DNA from: Phaeosaccion multiseriatum
Taxonomy: Eukaryota > Protista > Ochrophyta, other classes
Length of the DNA: 64,000 nt
Assembly: GCA_965112735.1 (NCBI GenBank)
Contig: OZ218953.1
Coordinates: forward strand, 3,844,001 to 3,908,000
Reading direction: 5' to 3'
Under the pieces are notes generated by a model. The model was not told where the DNA came from. It worked only from the letters and a program-made list of their open reading frames with translations, and did no database searches. The position numbers and the translations under genes were made by a program. Positions 30,869-40,644 of the stretch are shown piece after piece (position 1 is the stretch's first letter; each line of letters begins with the position of its first letter).

Positions 30869-33800
30869 ATGAATATGTTGCAAAGGAGAGTCACGACAGC
30901 TGCAGCAGCTCTTTTGCTCTGCTCCTCCCTGCAAGGCGGGGAGGCTTTCACTGCAACTATCTCGCGCTGTGGAAGGAAAGCATTGGAGCACCGGTCGAGA
31001 GGCGCTGCCCGTATAAGCTCTCCAGCCACGGGTCTGTGCCACGGCAGAAAGAGGCGCCTACACATGAGCTCCACCACCAGCAGCAGTAGCAGCGCCTTAG
31101 AGCAGGAGGAGGAGGAATTTGACGTTGTGGTTATTGGTTCGGGTATTGGGGGCTTGTCTGGCGCGGGTCTGGCTGCAACTTACGGCTATAGAGTGGCAGT
31201 TTGCGAGAGCCACTACCTCGCCGGAGGCGTGTGCCACAGGTATGTGACGAGCAAGGCTTGTCCTTAAAGGAAGTGCCCGTCGCACCCTCGCTCCAATGGT
31301 ATCCCGCCGCCCCTCTCTTACATTGCCGCGCAATCCGACCCACCGGCCTTGCCCCTACCCTCCCCAAATGCTTGGGCTGCTTGCTCAGCTTCGAAATTGA
31401 CGGCTACAAATTCGATGCCGGGCCCTCGCTGTGGGCGGGGATGGGTGAGAGCAGCACAAACCCCCTTCGACAGGTGCTGGACGTTACGGGGGCCGCCAAG
31501 GAGCTGGATTGGATATCGTATGATGGCTGGGGAATGCACATTCCTGAAGGCTACTTTCGCTTCAAAGTCGGGCCCGGCGTCTTTGAGGATGTGCTGCGCC
31601 AGTACGGAGGAGAGAAGGATGTTATGGCGTGGCGACTTCTCAACGATGCGATGAGGCCACTCCTTCAAGCTGGTGAGTCAGGCGGAGGCGTAGCTGCGCG
31701 CTGCTTCATCTCTTCCTTTCAGGCAACGAACTTGAGCTTGACCTCGAGTCTCGACCCTCTTGACTCATCTGCCTACCTGCTCCTGCCGTCTCCTTTGCCC
31801 CCGCCCTCGCGCATCTCCCGCCCGCTTCTGCCTCCTCCTTCGCCTTCGCCATCCATCAGCGGTAGCGCTGCCCCCAATGGCCCTCAGGGGAGACCTATTG
31901 GCGGGAGTGACGCTGGTGCCCTACCTTTTTGGAGCCCTCAAAGCCGCTGGTCTGGGGGTTACCAAGCTGGAGAACCCCTTCACTGAGGTCATGGACGGCA
32001 TCGTAGAGGAGGGTAGCTTTCTCTACCACTGGCTGGACTACTTGAGCTTTGCGCTCTCCGGTCTCCCCGCGGCAGGCACGCAGGCGGCCGCTGTCATATA
32101 GTAAGCTTACCGACCCCACAATCAACCCCAGCAAGTCAACCCAGTAACCCACTCCCACAACCCACCCACATGTCGACCCCAGTACCATAGGTGACCTGCA
32201 CCGCCCAGGGTGCAACTTGGATTACCCGGCCGGGGGCGGAGGAGCCGTCATCGATGCCATGGTGAGGGCCATCGAGAGCAAGGGCGGCGAGGTCAAGCTC
32301 AAGACCCACGTTCAGAACATCATCGTCGAGGACGGGGAGGCCAAAGGTGAGGCAGTCGGGCAGATCGGCAGTCAGACAGGCAGTCAGGCAGGCTCGCGTA
32401 TCAGCCGTGTGAGTGCCTTCCCCGTCTTGTTGGCTTCGTCGCACTCCTGCCACCCCCTTCCGTGGGCCACCTCCATAACATGATGTACATACACCCTTTC
32501 CTTCCTCAGTCGATTGTTTTATTACAGCACGTGTACACCTACCTCCTTCTGCTCTCTTCAGGTGTGCTTCTGAAGAACGGAAGAACGATCCGGGCGAAGA
32601 AGGCGGTCATCTCGAATGCCTCCATTTGGGACACTGTCGACAAGCTGCTGCCCTCCGAGCTGGGCCCACAGAGTAGTTGGGGCAAGGACAAGATGGAGAC
32701 GCCAGATACTGGATCTTTCATGCACTTGCATTTGGGCATCGATGCCACTGACTTGGAAGGACTTGACATCCACTACTCCATTGTGGAGTCGTGGGAAGAG
32801 GCGAGTTACTGTGGCCTTCGTATTATCATCTTCTGACCCTCTCTCTCTTTTCATCTTCTCCATCTTATCCCTCTCTCCCCCTTCCCTTGTCTCTTCTACT
32901 GACTTCCATGTTCCCTGCCTGTCTCTCTCTCTCTCTCTCTCTATGTGACTCCCATACATCCCTTCTTCTTTTCGCTGTCGTCCCTCCGCCTGCAGCCCAT
33001 CGACGCACCCATGAACATGTACGTCGCCGAGGGAAGGGGGAGGGGTGTGAATGAGAAGGTCAAGGCCGTGGAAGGGGAGGAGTGAGGGACAAGGCTATGG
33101 AACAAGGCGGGGGTGCAGTAGGGCGAGGCTTTCCCCAAGACAGAGGGTCGAGAGAGGGGCAGGCCGTTCCGCAGCCCTCTCTTCCCCTCTCAATCTCCCT
33201 CATTCCCTCCCTAGGTAGATCGATCCTCGACCTTGTGCCTCGCCCCAGTGGCGGCATTTGAGCCTCACTCACTCCGCTGCCCCGATTGACCTTGTTCCCC
33301 AACCTCGTCCCCTCACCCCACCCTTCCACGGCCTTTGACCTGCTCACCCACACTGGTTCCAGGTTTATCGTGAGCATCCCTACGGTGCTCGACCCATCTC
33401 TCGCCCCTCCGGGGAAGCACCTAGTGCATATCTATACCGCGGGTAACGAGCCCTTCTCTCTCTGGGAGGGGCTCAAGAGAGGCTCCAGCGAGTACAAGGC
33501 TCTCAAGAAGGAGAGAGCAGAGTACATGTGGAAGGCCCTGGAGAGAATCATCCCAGACATCAGGAAGAGGACTGAAGTGGAGCTTGTGGGGTCCCCACTA
33601 ACCCATCAGTACTTCAATAGGTGTGTATGAGTATTGAATTGAATCGCAATTGCAATTGGATGGATGGATGTCGTGCCACCCTACGTATTTTCTTTTGCCT
33701 TCTCTATGCAATGGAGTCCTAACTGTCTGAACGGATGGCCGCCAGCCGTCGGATCTTTCACGTGTTAAACCTACTGCAACCGTGATGATGGATCGTCTTA

Positions 33801-34071: not shown

Positions 34072-34502
34072 TTTAGTTTTGTACACGCTTTGTCACTATC
34101 CCTTTGACACACACAGGTTTTCAAAGAGAGAGGAAAGTGTAGGGTGACAGGATAGAACAATAATGAAAGGAGATGTTTGCGTGTGCGTGTTGTGATGCTT
34201 CAGTTTCAGTTTCAGTTTATTACCCGTTGGCACCCCCCTGATACACCCCCGGGGCGGACACTCCAGACCTCCAGATCGTGGACCGGCGCTTGCAGCTTGG
34301 GGCGGTTTGTACGGATACTGCGGCGGATAGCACGTCCTAGTTGGTGCTGCCCGACAGGCATAGCCCGCTGGAAGCCTGCGCTGGGGGTGCTCAAAGTTCA
34401 AAGTATGTCACTAAGTACGCCAGTTGGTGATACGGGTGGGCCTCCTCTCCTCCTCTCCTTGAATGATGCTCCTGTTCTCCCTCGCTCTGCCCTCTCTTCC
34501 TA

Positions 34503-37500
34503 ATGAGTGTATCCTGGAGGGCACTTGCCCTCGTTTTCTTATCATCTACGGCTGCGTTTGTGTTGGGAGTGACGACCCAGCGGCTCCTCCTTCTTCAAAG
34601 GACAGAGAAGACGGACGAGCCCAAGTTGAGCAAGAGGGCGCAGCGTAAGGAGAAGAGAAGGAAGAAAGATGAGGCTGAGAAGAATGGGGATCGCACCGCT
34701 CTTGGCTCTGTCGAGAGTGATTTGGCGAGAATGGAGAAGAAGAGGAGGAAAGCTTTGGAGCGCTCACAGAGCCGCAAAGATTGTGCCCTTGATGAGTTGG
34801 TCAAGAATGCTTCGGACTCCTTGGGTTTATCAACAGCAGTGAGTGAGGGGGTCGAAGGAGATAGAAGCGTTTTTGGGGGCTGGCCTTTCTCTTATCCAAG
34901 CCTTGCAGCGCAACCCCGTGTTCATTGTGAGCGTCGGCGACCCTCCCCCTTCCTCTTTGTTCTCGTCGTCTCCACGCGCCCTTCTTTCCCCTCAGCTCGG
35001 CGATAACAGTTATGAGCAGCTCTTGGTGCTTCCTCGCGAGGTATACCTGGAACACGCTTGCCTGCCTACGCATGCGAAGTGCAAGGGAAAGTTGTTGTCT
35101 CTTGGACGGGTTAGGGAAGTGCTTAAGCAGCAGCAGGGATCAGCGTCGTCGAAGATACTATTCGTAAGCCACAGGTACGGCCAGAGGTATGAGGCGAAGC
35201 TCTTCAGCAGAGAGGTTAAGGCGAAGAGGTGGAGTGAAGCTGTTGCCTTGAATGAGGAGGGCTGCTTCCTACTGACAGAGCGACAGAGCCACATTCTTCT
35301 ATCCCTCAAGCCCTCCCCCCCCCCCTCTCGCAGATGGACGGAGGATGACTTGGCCGATACACAGCAGGGAGCCACCCACAGTATCGTTTCTGAATTCTTG
35401 ACGGAGCACGAGGAGTTTGGATTCGTGTGGATCGACACCGCCAGCGTTGCCAGTCTCGCCGGAGGGAAGGGCGCCGAGGGGGGGCAAGTAACGCAGTCCA
35501 TTTCCGAGCTACATTGCCCTATGTTGGCTCTTCTACGAGCCGACGCCCTCCTTCTTGTGCCGCAGAATGGAGCGGCCGGGCCGAGTTCCGATGGAGGGTA
35601 TGAGGACCTGGAGGGGTGCCTGGCTAGGGCATGGCCAGCGCTGGAGTTCTCGCTGTCCCAGCTGGGCGGAGACTGCCCCGTGCATGTGAGACTGCATGGG
35701 AAGATCCGAACGATGGACCCGGGGTAAGTAAGAGAGGAGAGAAGAGAGCACTCTCCCCTTCTTCCATCCATCCCGCATTTTCGCCGATGCCTCACACCTA
35801 CTTGGCCCGGGCGTTCCCCCTCCCCCCTCTTCCTGCCCACCACTGACTCAGCATGGCTTTCCAGGATTTTGTGCGCGGAGTGGTCGAGGAGGTGGGCTTG
35901 GCAGAGGCGGGAGGGGAAGATGCGTTGAGAAGCAACAATTGGCTGACCGCGAGAGACCCCATGCAAGTAAGTGCGTTGTCTCAGAGTAGGCTCTGATCTG
36001 TGCTGTGTCGCTCCGTCTGCTATCCGAGGGAAGGCGGGGCGTGCCCCATCTTGTCTTAGAGCGGGGAGGCGCACCCACAATGGCCTGCACCTGGCTGTGG
36101 ATATGACTGTGGATCAATCCATACGCAGTTAGACTTTCTGGACAGGCTCTTCATGGGCTGAGATGAACCGGTTCCACCTCCCCTACACCTCCCGATTCCC
36201 CACCCCGCCTCTTTCCCTTGAAAGGTCATGGCCGTCGCGAGAGACGAAGTCATGTCTGTGGGCAGTGCAGAGGAGACACAACGCCTCCTTCGAACCATGC
36301 TGGAGGCCGTAAGTTCCCCTCATGAGAGCAGCCTCGGGAATCGCGGCGATGGGTGTCCTCCCCGCCCCTCTGTTGAGACTTCTGTTGAGACCTCTTTTGA
36401 GCAGGCCTTTCCGGGTACAATCGCAGCGATGAGGAAGGCTGCACGGCCGCGAGACGGCGCGCTTGCGGCGTATCTGCTCCTCTCCGCTGTGTCGTGGACC
36501 AACCTCAAGCCGAAGCTTACCTACACGGACAATGTGGAGTGCCCAAAGGAGGTGAGGAGGACAGGTTCCATTCTCTCTTCAAGGCTCGACCATGAATGGG
36601 AGGACAAACGGCAAAGTGAGTAACTCTGTTGGCCCCTTTCCCCTCCGCCCTCGCAGATGACCTACCAGACCGTCGCGGTGGTGCGCTCCCCTTACAAGGA
36701 GCGCTTTGGGACTCCACGCCAGCCATTCGTGACTGCAGGAGTACTGCAGGGCAGGGAGCTGGAGGGACAGGTGCTGTTTCACAAGGGTCAGGGCTTCGAG
36801 GAGGCCCTCGAGGACTTGGAAGGTGCGTGGGATAAGAGGAGGCGAGAGGGGGCGATGTCAGTGCACGCGCAAGCAAGCACTTGGGGGTGTGGAGCTTGGG
36901 AGAGTTGTGCGGAGGGAAAACACACAATTGATGGGAGGTTTTTCTTGGTATGCATTCTTGTTTTGCCGTGGTCTGTTGTCTCTCTTCTGCCTGTGCTCCT
37001 TGCCTCTGCCTCTGAAGGGTTCGAGTATGTGTGGCTCGTCACGCACATGCACCTCAACAAGGGGTGGAGTCGCAAGGTGCGCCCGCCGCGCCTGCCAGAG
37101 AGGAAGGTGGGGCTCTTCGCCACTCGCTCGCCACACAGACCGAATCCACGTGAGTGTGCGCCTTTTACCCTTTTGGGCTGGCTGCCAACCCCCAGAAGAA
37201 GGGGATACACCGCAGAGGTCAAGTTCTTTCTGTGTGCTGTACAGCGTTGATTGCCCTTGATGCCTACGCTTCCCCCTTGACCCCTGACTCCGTCTCCCTT
37301 CTTCCCACTCTCGCAGTGGCGCTCTCCGCAGTGCGCATAACGTCGGTGGACGCGAGGCAAGGCATCATCAACGTGTCAGGCCTGGACCTCCTGGACGGCA
37401 CGCCCGTGCTGGTGAGACGAATTGCCCGACTTACCTTATTCTATCGCTATCGGCCAACACCTTTGCAGCAGCGGCGTGCTCGACTATCGCCTCAGCACAC

Positions 37501-37816
37501 ACGCTCTCTGTCTCTTATCTTGCTGACTTGCGCTCTTTCCCCTCTTCTGTGTGTCCTTCCCGCGCTTCCCCTCTCGCAGGACGTCAAACCGTACGTGCCA
37601 TATTGCGACAGCTTCTCGACCGCTAAATGCGGGTGGCTCGACGAGCTCGTCAGTAATGGCTCCTGCGAAGGGGGCGGAGAGGCGCCCCTCCACCACCACC
37701 ACCAGCAGCAGCAGCATGAGCAGCAAGCTGACTTCTTGGGTAGCTACAGCGTGGGGGCTGCGCTCGTGCAGCGGCAGCAACAGGAGCATGAACTGGCAGA
37801 GCATGAGCAGGAGTAG
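34503..37816 (+). CDS. TrmO/TsaA (YaeB) tRNA m6t6A37 methyltransferase domain fused behind a TM segment and a HET-like domain
   Basis: C-terminal VAVVRSPYKERFGTPRQP, LEDLE|GFEYVWL, KVRPPRL..VGLFATRSPHRPNP, SGLDLLDGTPVL|DVKPYVPYCD is typical TrmO. Upstream exons (ILFVSHR|W, FVWIDTASV, ARAWPALEF) join it in frame through canonical junctions. Confidence 0.85.
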
Positions 37817-37878: not shown

Positions 37879-40644
37879 TCAGAGGAGGTCCCCTGTGGCC
37901 TTGTACTGTGACGGCACCTCACTTGCCTGACCTGCCACCTCGTTCGGACTACGTCCCCCCTCTCCCTTCCCTGCTGCTGGTGCCGCCGCCTGCTGTCGCA
38001 CGGGAATGGGGTGCAAGTCCACGTCGCCAGGACTGTCTTCTTCGGAGGAGCCGCCCGTGTCCATGGGGCTGAAGCCACGCATGCTGGAAAAGCAGCAGCA
38101 GCAGCAGTTGTCGTCGCAATTTTGACGCTTGTGCGCCATCTGTTGCGCAATCTCCTCCGGCTCCTTGCCAAGCGTCTCCGGCGCAAAGTGGTAAATGAAC
38201 AACAAGCCTGGGATGGGGTGCCGTACCGTACAGCCGCACGATCAAACAAGGAACAGCAGAGTGCCAGAGCGTCAAAATACGAGGCGGAGATGAGCCAACG
38301 CCGCCCAATCAAGTACTTAAGTACTACGTAGTATAAGGCATGCATCATCATCATCACCATCATTATCATCATCACCACCATCATCCCGTCTTGGTGTGGT
38401 ATGGGGTAGGGTGGTGGCTTCAGTTCGAGGCTCTCACCTAAGAGGCTCAAGATGGACATGCCAAAAAAAGTAGCAGCCTCGCCCACGGCATGCAGACAGC
38501 CGAGGAAGCGGACCGTCACGGCGAAGTTGAAGAGCCAATTTGCCGTCAGCGATATCCCAATCGCCCTGACACGCACAGAGACCAAGAGTACACCGACAAC
38601 AGAAAGCAGCAGTTGGTGATACAGCAGCGCTGGTGAAGGGCATCGAAGATTGGGGCGAGGGAGACAGGCGGAGACGGAAAGAGGGAGAGAACAATTCATT
38701 AGGCAACAATGGTGTTCACGTCACACGACCCTTACCTTCCTCGTAGACTCGAAGGGAACATCTCACTGGTCAACAGCCACGTAATGGGCCCATCGCCTAA
38801 CGCGTACGCAGCCACAACACAGCAGCACCCCGCGAAGGCCAAAGCAGAGGCCGTGGTAGTGCCCCGTATGAAGGGGAGGAAGCTCATCCCTGTAACAGAT
38901 GAGGGCAAGGAGGAGAGGACGGAGGCGAGGCAGTAACGACAAACAAGTGCGTGTTTGTCGTACAACAAGAAATGTAAAGAGGGGTTTCTTCCATGGTTTG
39001 ACAGGAGCAAGTTGGCGCACTCCCTCCACTCACCGAGCACGCTCAAGCTGCAGGTCATGATAATCGAGCCCAGGAGGAGTAGTGTCCTCCGTCCAGCATG
39101 GTCGACCTTGAGCACAGCCACAGCCGTGAAAAACACCTGGAAAGGCAGGGCAGGGCAGGGTAGGGCAGTTGGTGATGTGAGGCAGGGCAGGGCGGTGCAG
39201 TGAAGGAAGCACGGGGGCAAAAGGGGGAGATCTAGAGGGAGAGCCCAATCCGTCTATTACCCCCCATCTCGCTTGGAAAGGACGACTTGCTCTTCTGCTT
39301 CCGAGCGATGAGTGTAACCCACCTTGACCAGACCGAGCCCGACAGTTGCGGCGTAGTTGCTCCCCTTTATGCCCGCCCTGGCGAACACCTCAGGTGCATA
39401 GTAAAGCACGTTGGCCTGTCCGGTCAGCTGCTGAACCATCATCAGCCCCAAGCCGACGAGCAGCTGCGGACGCCAATAACGGATGAGATCAATCGCATGT
39501 GCCCCGCCGCTAGCTTCTTGAGACTTGCGAATCCTCTCCGCCTCCGCTTCAACCAGACGAAGTGAGCGGTCCTGCTCTCCGTCTCCTCCTCGTCCCATTG
39601 CTGCTGGGTCCAAAGCATCCGTGCTTGACGCCGAGCTCGATAGAGGTCCGTTCTGCTCCCCCCTTCCACGGGCACCAGCAGCCCCACCAAGGCCTCCTTG
39701 TTCTGTTCCTCCCCCGTCTTCAGCTCCACGATATCCGTAAATCTCGTGCAGCACTCGCATGGCTGCTCGCTCTTGGCCGTGTTCAAAAAGCCAAGAGGGG
39801 CTCTCGGGAACAGTCTTCATTCCCAACAGCTGTAGCGCCGCCAACACGCCTGCCCTCGTATCATGGGCACAGTCGGGGATGAGAGGGTGAGGGCAGTGTC
39901 CTACGCTCCCATTGGTGCCCTTTAGCTCGGAAGGTACCTATATAACGTACTTGAGCCCTCCACACACACACACGCAAACGCACTGTACCTGTGAAGCCAA
40001 ACATGAATCGCCAGCCATCCGTGACGTCTCTCAGGAGGAAAGAGATGAAGAAGGACAGGAGGACGCCGACGCTTATCATGATCTCGTTCATGCTGACTAT
40101 TGCGCCTCGGACGCTATGCGGCGAAACCTGCAAGGCGGAGGTGGGGCAAGCCGCATGAGCTTGACTGCTGCATGTTCTCTGCCGGAGAGTGGGCTACGTG
40201 CTACCTTACCTCAGTCAGATAGGCGACGTCAGCTATAGCGCTGACCGACACCGCCACCCCGATCAGGAACCTCCCTACGAACAGCATCGGCAATCCCTGG
40301 GCAGCACATAAGAAAACTGTCCCGATGATGAAGCAGAAGTCCGTCAGCATGATCGCCCTGAGCCGGCCAAGCCGATCCGTAAGCAGCCCGCCCAAAGGTG
40401 CGCCTACGGTTGCTCCTACTAGAAGGGCGGACACAAAGAGGTCTTGTTGGAGAAAGGACAACCCCATTGACTCAGCGAGCTGAAAGTTCGCCCCGGCCAC
40501 AACTCCGAGGTCATAGCCGAAGAGTAGCCCCCCAATGCTACCGAATAAGGCGACTCGTACACAGAAGCGCTTCGCCTTGGGAGAGAGGTATGTATCCACC
40601 ACGGTCGTGTGTTCCGTAAAGGAGGGATTGGAGTAATTGATCAT
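37879..40644 (-). CDS. MFS sugar porter (GLUT10/12- or plant VGT-like)
   Basis: GGLLFGYDLGVVAGA; DRLGR; AYLTE|VSP..RG; PESPSWL; QQLTGQANVLYYAP; VDHAGRRTLLL; GPITWLLTSEMFP..RGRA; NWLFNF; PETLGKEPEEI. Confidence 0.93.

Follow-up and report, generated by a model that had tools for sequence, protein, structure and literature searches.

Between positions 34503 and 37816 on the forward strand of a 64,000-nucleotide (nt) stretch of Phaeosaccion multiseriatum DNA (contig OZ218953.1; the whole stretch is called the window, and its coordinates are used throughout) lies a gene which, in a ten-exon model with GT-AG introns, encodes a protein of about 627 amino acids (aa). In it a hydrophobic N-terminal anchor and a domain resembling the heterokaryon-incompatibility (HET) domain of fungi are followed by a methyltransferase of the TrmO type, and homology on both sides of the junction gives us high confidence that this fusion is real and encoded by one gene. 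The model is stop-free throughout; all nine introns are bounded by GT..AG, mostly with GTAAGT or GTGAGT donors and a pyrimidine tract leading to a CAG acceptor, and GC content by codon position runs high-low-high in every exon. Its parts are the following (forward strand in each case; a slash marks the splice junction).

34503..34838, forward strand, exon 1: start codon, short N-terminal flank MSVSWR, moderately hydrophobic anchor of 19 residues (about nt 34521-34577) and a Lys/Arg/Glu-rich stretch; donor GCA/GTGAGT.
34996..35174, forward strand, exon 2: pre-domain segment (LLVLPREVYLEH..C..) and ILFVSHR, the first strand of the HET-like domain; aligned to the homologues P0001-P0004 and to the own-genome locus L001 described below.
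35175..35333, forward strand, intron: 159 nt, in frame and stop-free (CAG/GTACGG ... C-rich tract, CAG/A); its removal creates SHRW.
35334..35723, forward strand, exon 3: remaining HET-like domain with the W of SHRW, FVWIDTASV, LLRADA and ARAWPALEF; own-genome profile match E 1.8e-41.
35852..35966, forward strand, exon 4: linker with NNWL..DP; called from phase, the CTGACTCAG acceptor, a GTAAGT donor and codon-position GC.
36225..36308, forward strand, exon 5: linker, the least certain exon; called from splice signals, phase and GC pattern.
36405..36551, forward strand, exon 6: fusion point, with the tail helix AAYLLLSAVSW and then KPKLTYTD (nt 36507-36530).
36552..36656, forward strand, contested intron: 105 nt, phase 0/0 (donor GAG/GTGAGG ... 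pyrimidine tract, CCCTCGCAG/ATG), between NVECPKE and MTYQTVAVVRSP (MTYQTVAVV).
36657..36822, forward strand, exon 7: start of the TrmO beta-barrel (VAVVRSPYKERFGTPRQ; Gln corresponds to E. coli Q25); matches TIGR00104 positions 5-30.
37018..37149, forward strand, exon 8: TrmO_N core (FEYVWLV..HLNKGW..GLFATRSPHRPNP; Arg corresponds to E. coli R92); matches PF01980 and TIGR00104.
37317..37411, forward strand, exon 9: TrmO_N (GLDLLDGTPVL; Asp corresponds to E. coli D125); matches PF01980.
37580..37816, forward strand, exon 10: DVKPYVPYCD (Lys corresponds to E. coli K136), His/Gln/Glu-rich tail and TAG stop.

Searches, family comparisons and structure analyses were run exon by exon, and the exons were joined solely to check continuity of the frame. 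A first, sequence-only reading of this DNA had traced ILFVSHRW, FVWIDTASV, CLARAWPALEF and NVECPKE/MTYQTVAVVRSP through a single phase, and all four strings are indeed present on the forward strand with phase continuous, ILFVSHRW once the 159-nt intron is taken out. That intron came to light late: an initial nine-exon model was open over 680 codons, and alignment to homologues exposed 53 extra residues between FVSHR and W, where the unspliced frame reads ILFVSHRYGQ. These 53 residues are missing from all four homologues and score a predicted local distance difference test (pLDDT) of just 37-52 in a model of the unspliced window piece. The in-frame GC content at third codon positions of the intron is coding-like (0.72), and an isoform that retains it may exist; it would insert the 53 residues after the first strand and part SHR from W. 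Two of the nine introns (the other being 36309-36404, 96 nt) are both in frame and stop-free, such that retained forms would still encode a full-length protein. As for the linker, the best BLAST segment of exon 4 is colinear with P0003 354-373 yet not significant (E 1.3), exon 5 has no similarity to P0003 detectable by pairwise BLAST, and none of the short linker exons has a significant pairwise match in P0003 or P0002.

The homologues themselves are few. An exhaustive HMMER search with the unspliced domain exon against 1.84 billion representative proteins returned just P0001, P0002 and P0003 (E ~3e-5), and two of these three related clusters (P0001, P0003), both from uncultured eukaryotes, are fusions. 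P0001 (608 aa) runs from an N-terminal hydrophobic helix over a basic stretch, an HET-like domain and a linker into a complete TrmO and is encoded by a single intronless open reading frame (ORF) of 1,827 nt on a gene-dense eukaryotic metagenome contig. P0003, too, has the anchor, the N-terminal domain, the linker and VVRSPYKERFGTPRQ / ...HPIAVVRSPYKERFGTPRQ in one ORF, which is interrupted close to the contig end by what looks like an intron. The Met at the junction is missing from both proteins, and 15 residues of the window at the start of the TrmO barrel (exon 7) recur unchanged in both.

Further evidence comes from the TrmO side. A scan of metagenome contigs with an alignment of the TrmO junction gave 41 TrmO loci (L022-L062), none of which has the anchor and HET-like part (hereafter the N-module) upstream. 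Stand-alone metagenomic TrmO ORFs begin with M[KR]RKKP.QDHT, and eukaryote-like ones read RPP..YT[DG]; the underlying pattern [KR][KR]P..[DRN][HY]T precedes the barrel by a constant distance in 22 of the 23 other subfamily loci that can be placed in register, as well as in a paralogue on contig 4 of the same genome. In the window its counterpart, KPKLTYTD, sits in exon 6 (36405-36551) and hence upstream of the contested intron. With that intron removed, the 20 residues before the barrel align to the contig-4 paralogue without a gap (TYTD is identical, and YTD to VV.SPY spans 14 residues in both), and 8 of 20 are identical to those of L045. A motif profile built from the 23 other TrmO loci, with the window excluded, scores 7.5 bits exactly at KPKLTYTD, which ranks 3 of 1,643 six-frame window ORFs; just three places in about 114,000 window residues score as high. 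Taken as a blind search this match is not significant, while for one position specified beforehand it appears strong. The same exon carries AAYLLLSAVSW, the counterpart of the RLLLFT helix that ends stand-alone N-modules and that directly precedes TrmO in P0001 and P0003. Since the tail helix of the N-module and the N-terminal motif of TrmO are both found in exon 6, the fusion point would fall inside one exon, and since splicing restores the 14-residue spacing to the barrel, the Met at 36657 would be internal.

It is against this background that a two-gene organisation has to be judged, in which an anchor and HET-like gene ends at about 36620, a separate TrmO starts from the ATG at 36657 and the in-phase junction is coincidental. 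Met 36657 does precede the conserved start of the barrel by five residues, a position similar to that of a bacterial TrmO start, and the upstream frame, if unspliced, stops at 36621-36623. However, the gap from stop to ATG would then measure only 33 nt, a strong pyrimidine tract with a CAG acceptor abuts that very ATG, the TrmO-subfamily motif sits at its exact spacing on the wrong side of the contested intron, and P0001 and P0003 read through in one ORF with no Met at the junction. So to our minds two genes are very unlikely indeed, and the claim of the sequence-only reading that a hydrophobic N-terminus, an HET-like domain and TrmO are joined in one gene is borne out by single-ORF orthologues together with TrmO-subfamily homology across the contested intron. 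Two lessons can be drawn from this: SHRW, the best marker of the domain, is absent from the unspliced frame, and what decided in favour of the fusion was a subfamily motif that straddles an intron.

The N-module also exists on its own, both in another organism and as a paralogue in the same genome. We considered whether P0002/P0004 might be truncated fusions and rejected this: P0004 ends at a stop, the next ORF of 82 aa is unrelated, and a Tctex-1 gene lies on the opposite strand within 300 nt. The own-genome case is L013 on contig 11 (2225859-2226209; ORF L013:910-2277), a TrmO-free paralogue of the complete N-module (E 1.1e-12). It reads SHPRW, HVWLESACVSE (with the block-2 Asp, see below, changed to Glu), LFRCDAILLVP and TRAWVQVE, followed later by an IVLLFL helix / (V)LLF tail.

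The assignment of the C-terminal part to TrmO is confirmed. PF01980 (cut-off 26.8) matches exon 8 (37020-37148) at 45.7 bits (E 9e-12) and exon 9 (37319-37411) at 24.6 bits, and TIGR00104, applied exon by exon, gives 19, 39.1 (exon 8) and 17.5 bits. The TrmO part of P0001 passes both cut-offs (PF01980 117.5 bits; TIGR00104 128 bits against an equivalog cut-off of 93.25) and aligns to solved TrmO/YaeB structures (7btu, E 2.5e-26; 1xqb, E 3.9e-22), and exon 9 of the window is 71% identical to it. In E. coli TrmO, Q25, R92, D125 and K136 have been shown by mutation to bind S-adenosylmethionine (AdoMet) (PMC4132733). With positions fixed through the alignment of P0001 to 7btu and 1xqb, all four residues are retained in the window, in FGTPRQ (Gln), FATRSPHRPNP (Arg), LDLLDGTPVL (Asp) and DVKPY (Lys). 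What exon 10 does not contain is the C-terminal DPRxxY domain: the tail has no Pfam or NCBIfam match, and TrmO_C (PF18389) was found nowhere in the genome, the E. coli control being positive. E. coli TrmO requires this domain to form N6-methyl-N6-threonylcarbamoyladenosine (m6t6A), and archaeal homologues are without it, m6t6A having never been detected in archaeal tRNAs (PMC4132733).

Three TrmO loci are present in the genome: a divergent one on contig 1, the fused gene and the close paralogue on contig 4 at 5.29 Mb (L007/L005; 5289536-5289960, reverse strand). The last has the motif RPPPRTYTD and VVVSPYKERHGTPRQ, Ser/Leu/Pro low-complexity interruptions that are probably introns, and a presequence-like N-terminus (MLLLVAAFRFRGARGF... 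/ MLLLVAAFRFRGARGFTTRS); it may be an organelle-targeted TrmO and is the likely source of the fused copy. The sequence-only reading took TrmO for a housekeeping enzyme, a description that finds no support here, as the genome holds three loci and the fused copy belongs to a short subfamily without the DPRxxY domain. The fused TrmO is, then, a specialised paralogue for which a housekeeping role is not obvious. Throughout this short subfamily (L022-L062) the start M[KR]RKKP.QDHT is strongly conserved some 14-18 residues ahead of the barrel; we know of no description of this motif, which may contact tRNA or a partner. Beyond the barrel, the otherwise unrelated tails of the window protein and P0001 have a short motif in common, F..SYSVGAALVQRQ (window 37700-37760) and EEFSVGSILIRQ (P0001 residues ~575-590), not seen in the stand-alone metagenomic TrmO ORFs examined.

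For the middle domain, the HET-like call of the sequence-only reading is partly borne out. The three motif blocks of HET domains occur in order and on matching secondary-structure elements. In block 1 the spliced ILFVSHRW of the window aligns with LFVSHRW of P0002 and FCHQW of P0001 and agrees with the HET pattern, as does ARAWPALEF in block 3 (RxWxxQE), which keeps Arg, Trp and Glu and has Ala for Gln. Block 2 (WIDxxCIxQ) departs from it: FVWIDTASVAS keeps Trp, Ile and Asp, and Cys and Gln are both replaced by Ser, an alteration that the sequence-only reading had also noted. Motifs of P0001 and P0002 are near-canonical and retain D..SC..Q in block 2, while P0003 has lost the block-1 His/Trp and the block-2 Asp and kept the fusion. 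Invariant in the five-sequence alignment are L.LLR.DA, an Asp and, in block 3, both Trp and Glu; in the wider alignment set the block-3 Trp is nearly invariant (at least 90%).

Pfam HET (PF06985), searched at E<=10, matches neither the window exons nor P0001-P0003 nor eight of the ten aligned domain pieces, and TIR families of Pfam at the same limit match neither the window exons nor P0001-P0003. A link to HET is nevertheless provided by two loci of the same genome whose sole Pfam match is HET, at scores (19.7 bits for L001 and 18.4 bits for L002; best per-protein E 6e-4) below the gathering score of 22.5 bits. By hhalign the family matches L001 (contig 13) with 97% probability (E 1.1e-10), in an alignment that covers the pre-domain segment, SH.W and W.DY.C..Q, and L002 (contig 12) with 96% probability (E 1.3e-9) from WIDF.C.PQ to SRAWCRLE. 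A profile search of the genome found further HET-like relatives, including L013 and L015. Elsewhere the family profile matched chance-level RNA-binding proteins only among PDB sequences; word-indexed protein searches with unspliced exon 2-3, P0001 residues 100-300 and the family alignment gave nothing beyond the known proteins; and scanning metagenome contigs with an alignment of the LLRADA pattern yielded 148 pattern matches and no relative.

Predicted structure agrees with this. For the P0001 domain, an AlphaFold2 model (10-row alignment; pLDDT 75, predicted template-modelling score 0.76) has a strand-helix-strand-helix-strand-helix core. In the ESM Atlas, where predicted structures are compared with predicted structures, its nearest neighbours are haptophyte MORN, ankyrin (ANK) and unnamed clusters at template-modelling (TM) scores of 0.63-0.75 (0.65-0.75 for MORN/ANK), and among them are three fungal clusters, 95-98% of whose members carry PF06985, at TM 0.56, 0.58 and 0.63 over 138-160 residues. 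The Atlas feature search gave unnamed haptophyte clusters only (0.89-0.91). Against the PDB, Foldseek returned the TIR domains of ThsB, SPARTA, SARM1, TIR-1 and MAL together with nucleoside 2-deoxyribosyltransferases (NDT) and DNPH1, at probabilities of 0.9-1.0 and E values from 1.4e-3 (ThsB, the best; SPARTA and SARM1 ~5e-3) to 3e-2. VIA, an aligner independent of Foldseek, placed NDT-type chains at Z 7.4-6.3 and TIR domains (SARM1 6.5, ThsB 6.2, IL-1RAcP) at Z 6.5-5.8, values to be read against a Z of about 8 for a clear match, as the lower range can arise from a common arrangement alone. Hence, of the HET or TIR fold expected from the sequence-only reading, the HET part is backed by the predicted fungal clusters, and the TIR and NDT matches are consistent with it yet weak.

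These scores also leave room for a generic three-layer alpha/beta domain of the NDT, LOG or DprA kind, for example one that binds or processes nucleotides, with a convergent resemblance to HET motifs. Such a view could appeal to the top PDB matches, which are of NDT type (7m5h, 1f8x, 1s2d) rather than TIRs and all below Z 8, to the missing Pfam HET match and to the sub-threshold scores through which the HET link runs. It would have to dismiss three correctly ordered blocks on the right secondary-structure elements, hhalign E values of 1e-9 to 1e-10 to loci whose only Pfam match is HET, and closest Atlas neighbours that include three independent fungal clusters with PF06985. Moreover, HET homologues have already been reported in stramenopiles and haptophytes (PMC4986451), and HET is considered remotely homologous to TIR (PMC4986451, PMC10890737). 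We therefore regard convergence as rather unlikely. Of the original HET claim, the motif blocks, the hhalign link and the fungal fold matches stand, while membership in the Pfam HET family is not established, and 'HET-like, with a TIR/NDT-type fold' seems the best description of the domain.

The anchor is a feature common to the family. In the window it is a hydrophobic 19-mer, ALALVFLSSTAAFVLGVTT, with a mean Kyte-Doolittle value of 1.92, and one layout describes the window protein, P0001, P0003 and P0002/P0004: an N-terminal flank of 3-11 residues, a hydrophobic stretch of 17-19 residues (mean Kyte-Doolittle 1.6-2.1 in all four proteins) and a basic C-terminal flank with 8-15 Lys plus Arg among the 40 residues that follow. 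From the positive-inside rule, and in analogy to signal-anchored outer-membrane proteins, we infer that the bulk of the protein would face the cytosol from the endoplasmic reticulum or an organelle outer membrane; the features of the stretch make anchoring in an organelle plausible. Could the stretch instead be the cleaved signal peptide of a bipartite plastid-targeting sequence, with a soluble enzyme in the complex plastid or its outer compartments? In all four proteins the stretch contains a small residue with an aromatic one after it (TAA-F, LLG-F, VVG-F, AAA-W), a pattern reminiscent of the ASAFAP-type motif at which ochrophyte plastid proteins are cleaved. But the hydrophobic run continues beyond the aromatic residue into a helix of 17-19 residues, and the next 40 residues, with 3-8 acidic ones and long Lys/Arg/Glu runs, are unlike a transit peptide, so a plastid signal seems unlikely to us.

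Our preferred interpretation, which we hold to be probable rather than assured, is that 34503-37816 encodes a membrane-tethered methyltransferase of the TrmO type, composed of a signal anchor, a divergent HET-like domain, a helical linker and a short-subfamily TrmO. The N-terminal helix with its strongly basic C-terminal flank would tether the protein and leave its bulk in the cytosol. There, a divergent HET-like domain of the TIR/NDT-type alpha/beta fold and then a helical linker would precede the TrmO barrel, the presumed catalytic part, which may methylate tRNA or another adenine-nucleotide substrate at the expense of AdoMet. The HET-like domain may mainly serve self-association or act as a nucleotide-binding accessory, because the classical HET motifs have degenerated in part of the fusion orthologues, whereas the fold, LLRADA and the block-3 Trp and Glu are retained. 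A single event could have given rise to this arrangement, if the TrmO paralogue that bears a presequence was duplicated and one copy fused to an anchor and HET-like gene already in place.

Several points weigh against this interpretation. Splicing of the whole gene was deduced from the DNA sequence, and exons 4 and 5 have splice signals, phase and composition alone in their favour. For the middle domain, neither Pfam HET nor Pfam TIR families match; PDB fold scores fall short of the clear level (Z <=7.4 for the P0001 domain, <=5.6 for the unspliced piece of the window); and that piece itself models at a pLDDT of 66, with the same top matches at Z 5.6-5.4. Topology and location derive from simple rules, and the missing DPRxxY domain makes the substrate of the fused TrmO uncertain. 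Finally, given the invariant Glu of RxWxxxE, the HET-like domain may itself be catalytic.

That last point leads to an immune or cell-death device, in which the HET/TIR-like domain cleaves NAD or a nucleotide and the TrmO barrel is a sensor, a decoy or a second effector through which tRNA or translation status would be coupled to death. In its favour, the window keeps SHRW in block 1, Asp in the WID of block 2, and Arg, Trp and Glu in block 3 (the last two being invariant in the family), and the genome has several other HET-like genes. Furthermore, the catalytic Glu of plant TIRs lies in a stretch, S.WCL.EL, that RxWC..E resembles. In fungi HET domains act in cell death, and they are remotely TIR-homologous (PMC10890737, PMC4986451). 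Yet the match of the invariant Glu to the catalytic Glu of TIRs is only putative, the enzymatic activity of HET itself is unknown (PMC10890737), and P0003 maintains the fusion although its block 1 no longer has His/Trp and its block 2 no longer has Asp. Nor does the protein contain an NTPase, a repeat sensor or any other immune-type partner domain, and the gene is single-copy, with no expansion and no close paralogue of the whole exon. All this renders a death device improbable; the more specific idea of the sequence-only reading, a guard- or decoy-type fusion, is without support in a single-copy gene that lacks an NTPase or repeat sensor and whose architecture is conserved across distant organisms.

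A more daring variant starts from tRNA import. Stramenopile mitochondria have lost trnT and are thought to import tRNA-Thr (PMC4824035), and E. coli TrmO acts on tRNA-Thr(GGU) (PMC4132733). One might therefore imagine a tRNA-modifying station on the organelle surface, where TrmO at the mitochondrial or plastid outer membrane methylates t6A37 of imported cytosolic tRNA-Thr and the HET-like domain oligomerises, gates by nucleotide, or cleaves NAD or nucleotide once tRNA supply or modification fails. We consider this very doubtful; if true, its NAD- or nucleotide-cleaving version would couple quality control of translation to a death domain of the TIR type.

As for the surroundings of the gene, an ATG-initiated ORF of 61 codons (34463-34648, forward strand) begins 40 nt upstream of the ATG at 34503, overlaps the gene out of frame and is a possible upstream ORF. 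An upstream exon (33286-33630, forward strand) looks, by eye only, to be of the amine-oxidase / carotenoid-isomerase type, and a downstream exon (38732-39220, reverse strand), again by eye only, looks like part of a converging sugar-porter gene of the major facilitator superfamily. If these calls hold, about 800 nt of intergenic DNA lie upstream of the fused gene and a short gap at its 3' side.

How does the fusion compare with known systems? TrmO/TsaA (YaeB, UPF0066; PF01980, TIGR00104) is a beta-barrel methyltransferase that forms m6t6A37 in tRNA (PMC4132733), and the window protein shares with it the barrel and the four AdoMet residues; identity to stand-alone metagenomic TrmO ORFs reaches 57%. 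It differs in that it has no DPRxxY domain, carries the subfamily N-terminal motif and places TrmO behind some 440 residues of anchor, HET-like domain and linker. With fungal HET (PF06985) it has in common the order SHRW / WID / RxWxxxE on a strand-helix-strand-helix-strand core. Here, by contrast, the block-2 Cys and Gln and the block-3 Gln are replaced, the most conserved motif is the family-specific LLRADA, and the domain is predicted to be membrane-anchored and is partnered with an RNA methyltransferase instead of NACHT/NB-ARC, repeats or a lectin. Closest in fold are protist HET-like proteins with MORN or ankyrin modules, from haptophyte and stramenopile clusters (TM 0.65-0.75), and closest in sequence within the genome are L001, L002 and L015, with which a pre-domain segment LP..a....P....C is common; these differ by having neither TrmO nor an N-terminal anchor. 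TIR, NDT and DNPH1 proteins appear to share the general flavodoxin-like fold of the model (Foldseek probability 0.97-1.0; VIA Z 5-7.4) and a Glu on the helix after the third strand, at identities of 6-19% and with no TIR or NDT match in Pfam.

Thus, the domains are known, their combination was not found described in the literature, and it is rare, with three related clusters, two of them fusions, among 1.84 billion representatives. HET domains are signature cell-death modules of fungal allorecognition whose biochemical activity is unknown and whose protist relatives are unstudied, and TrmO is a structurally unusual methyltransferase with forms that lack the C-terminal domain and have no assigned substrate. 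Conserved and single-copy, the fusion hints that some TrmO paralogues act at a membrane and provides a handle on a role of HET-like domains outside immunity, since the activity of the partner can be assayed.

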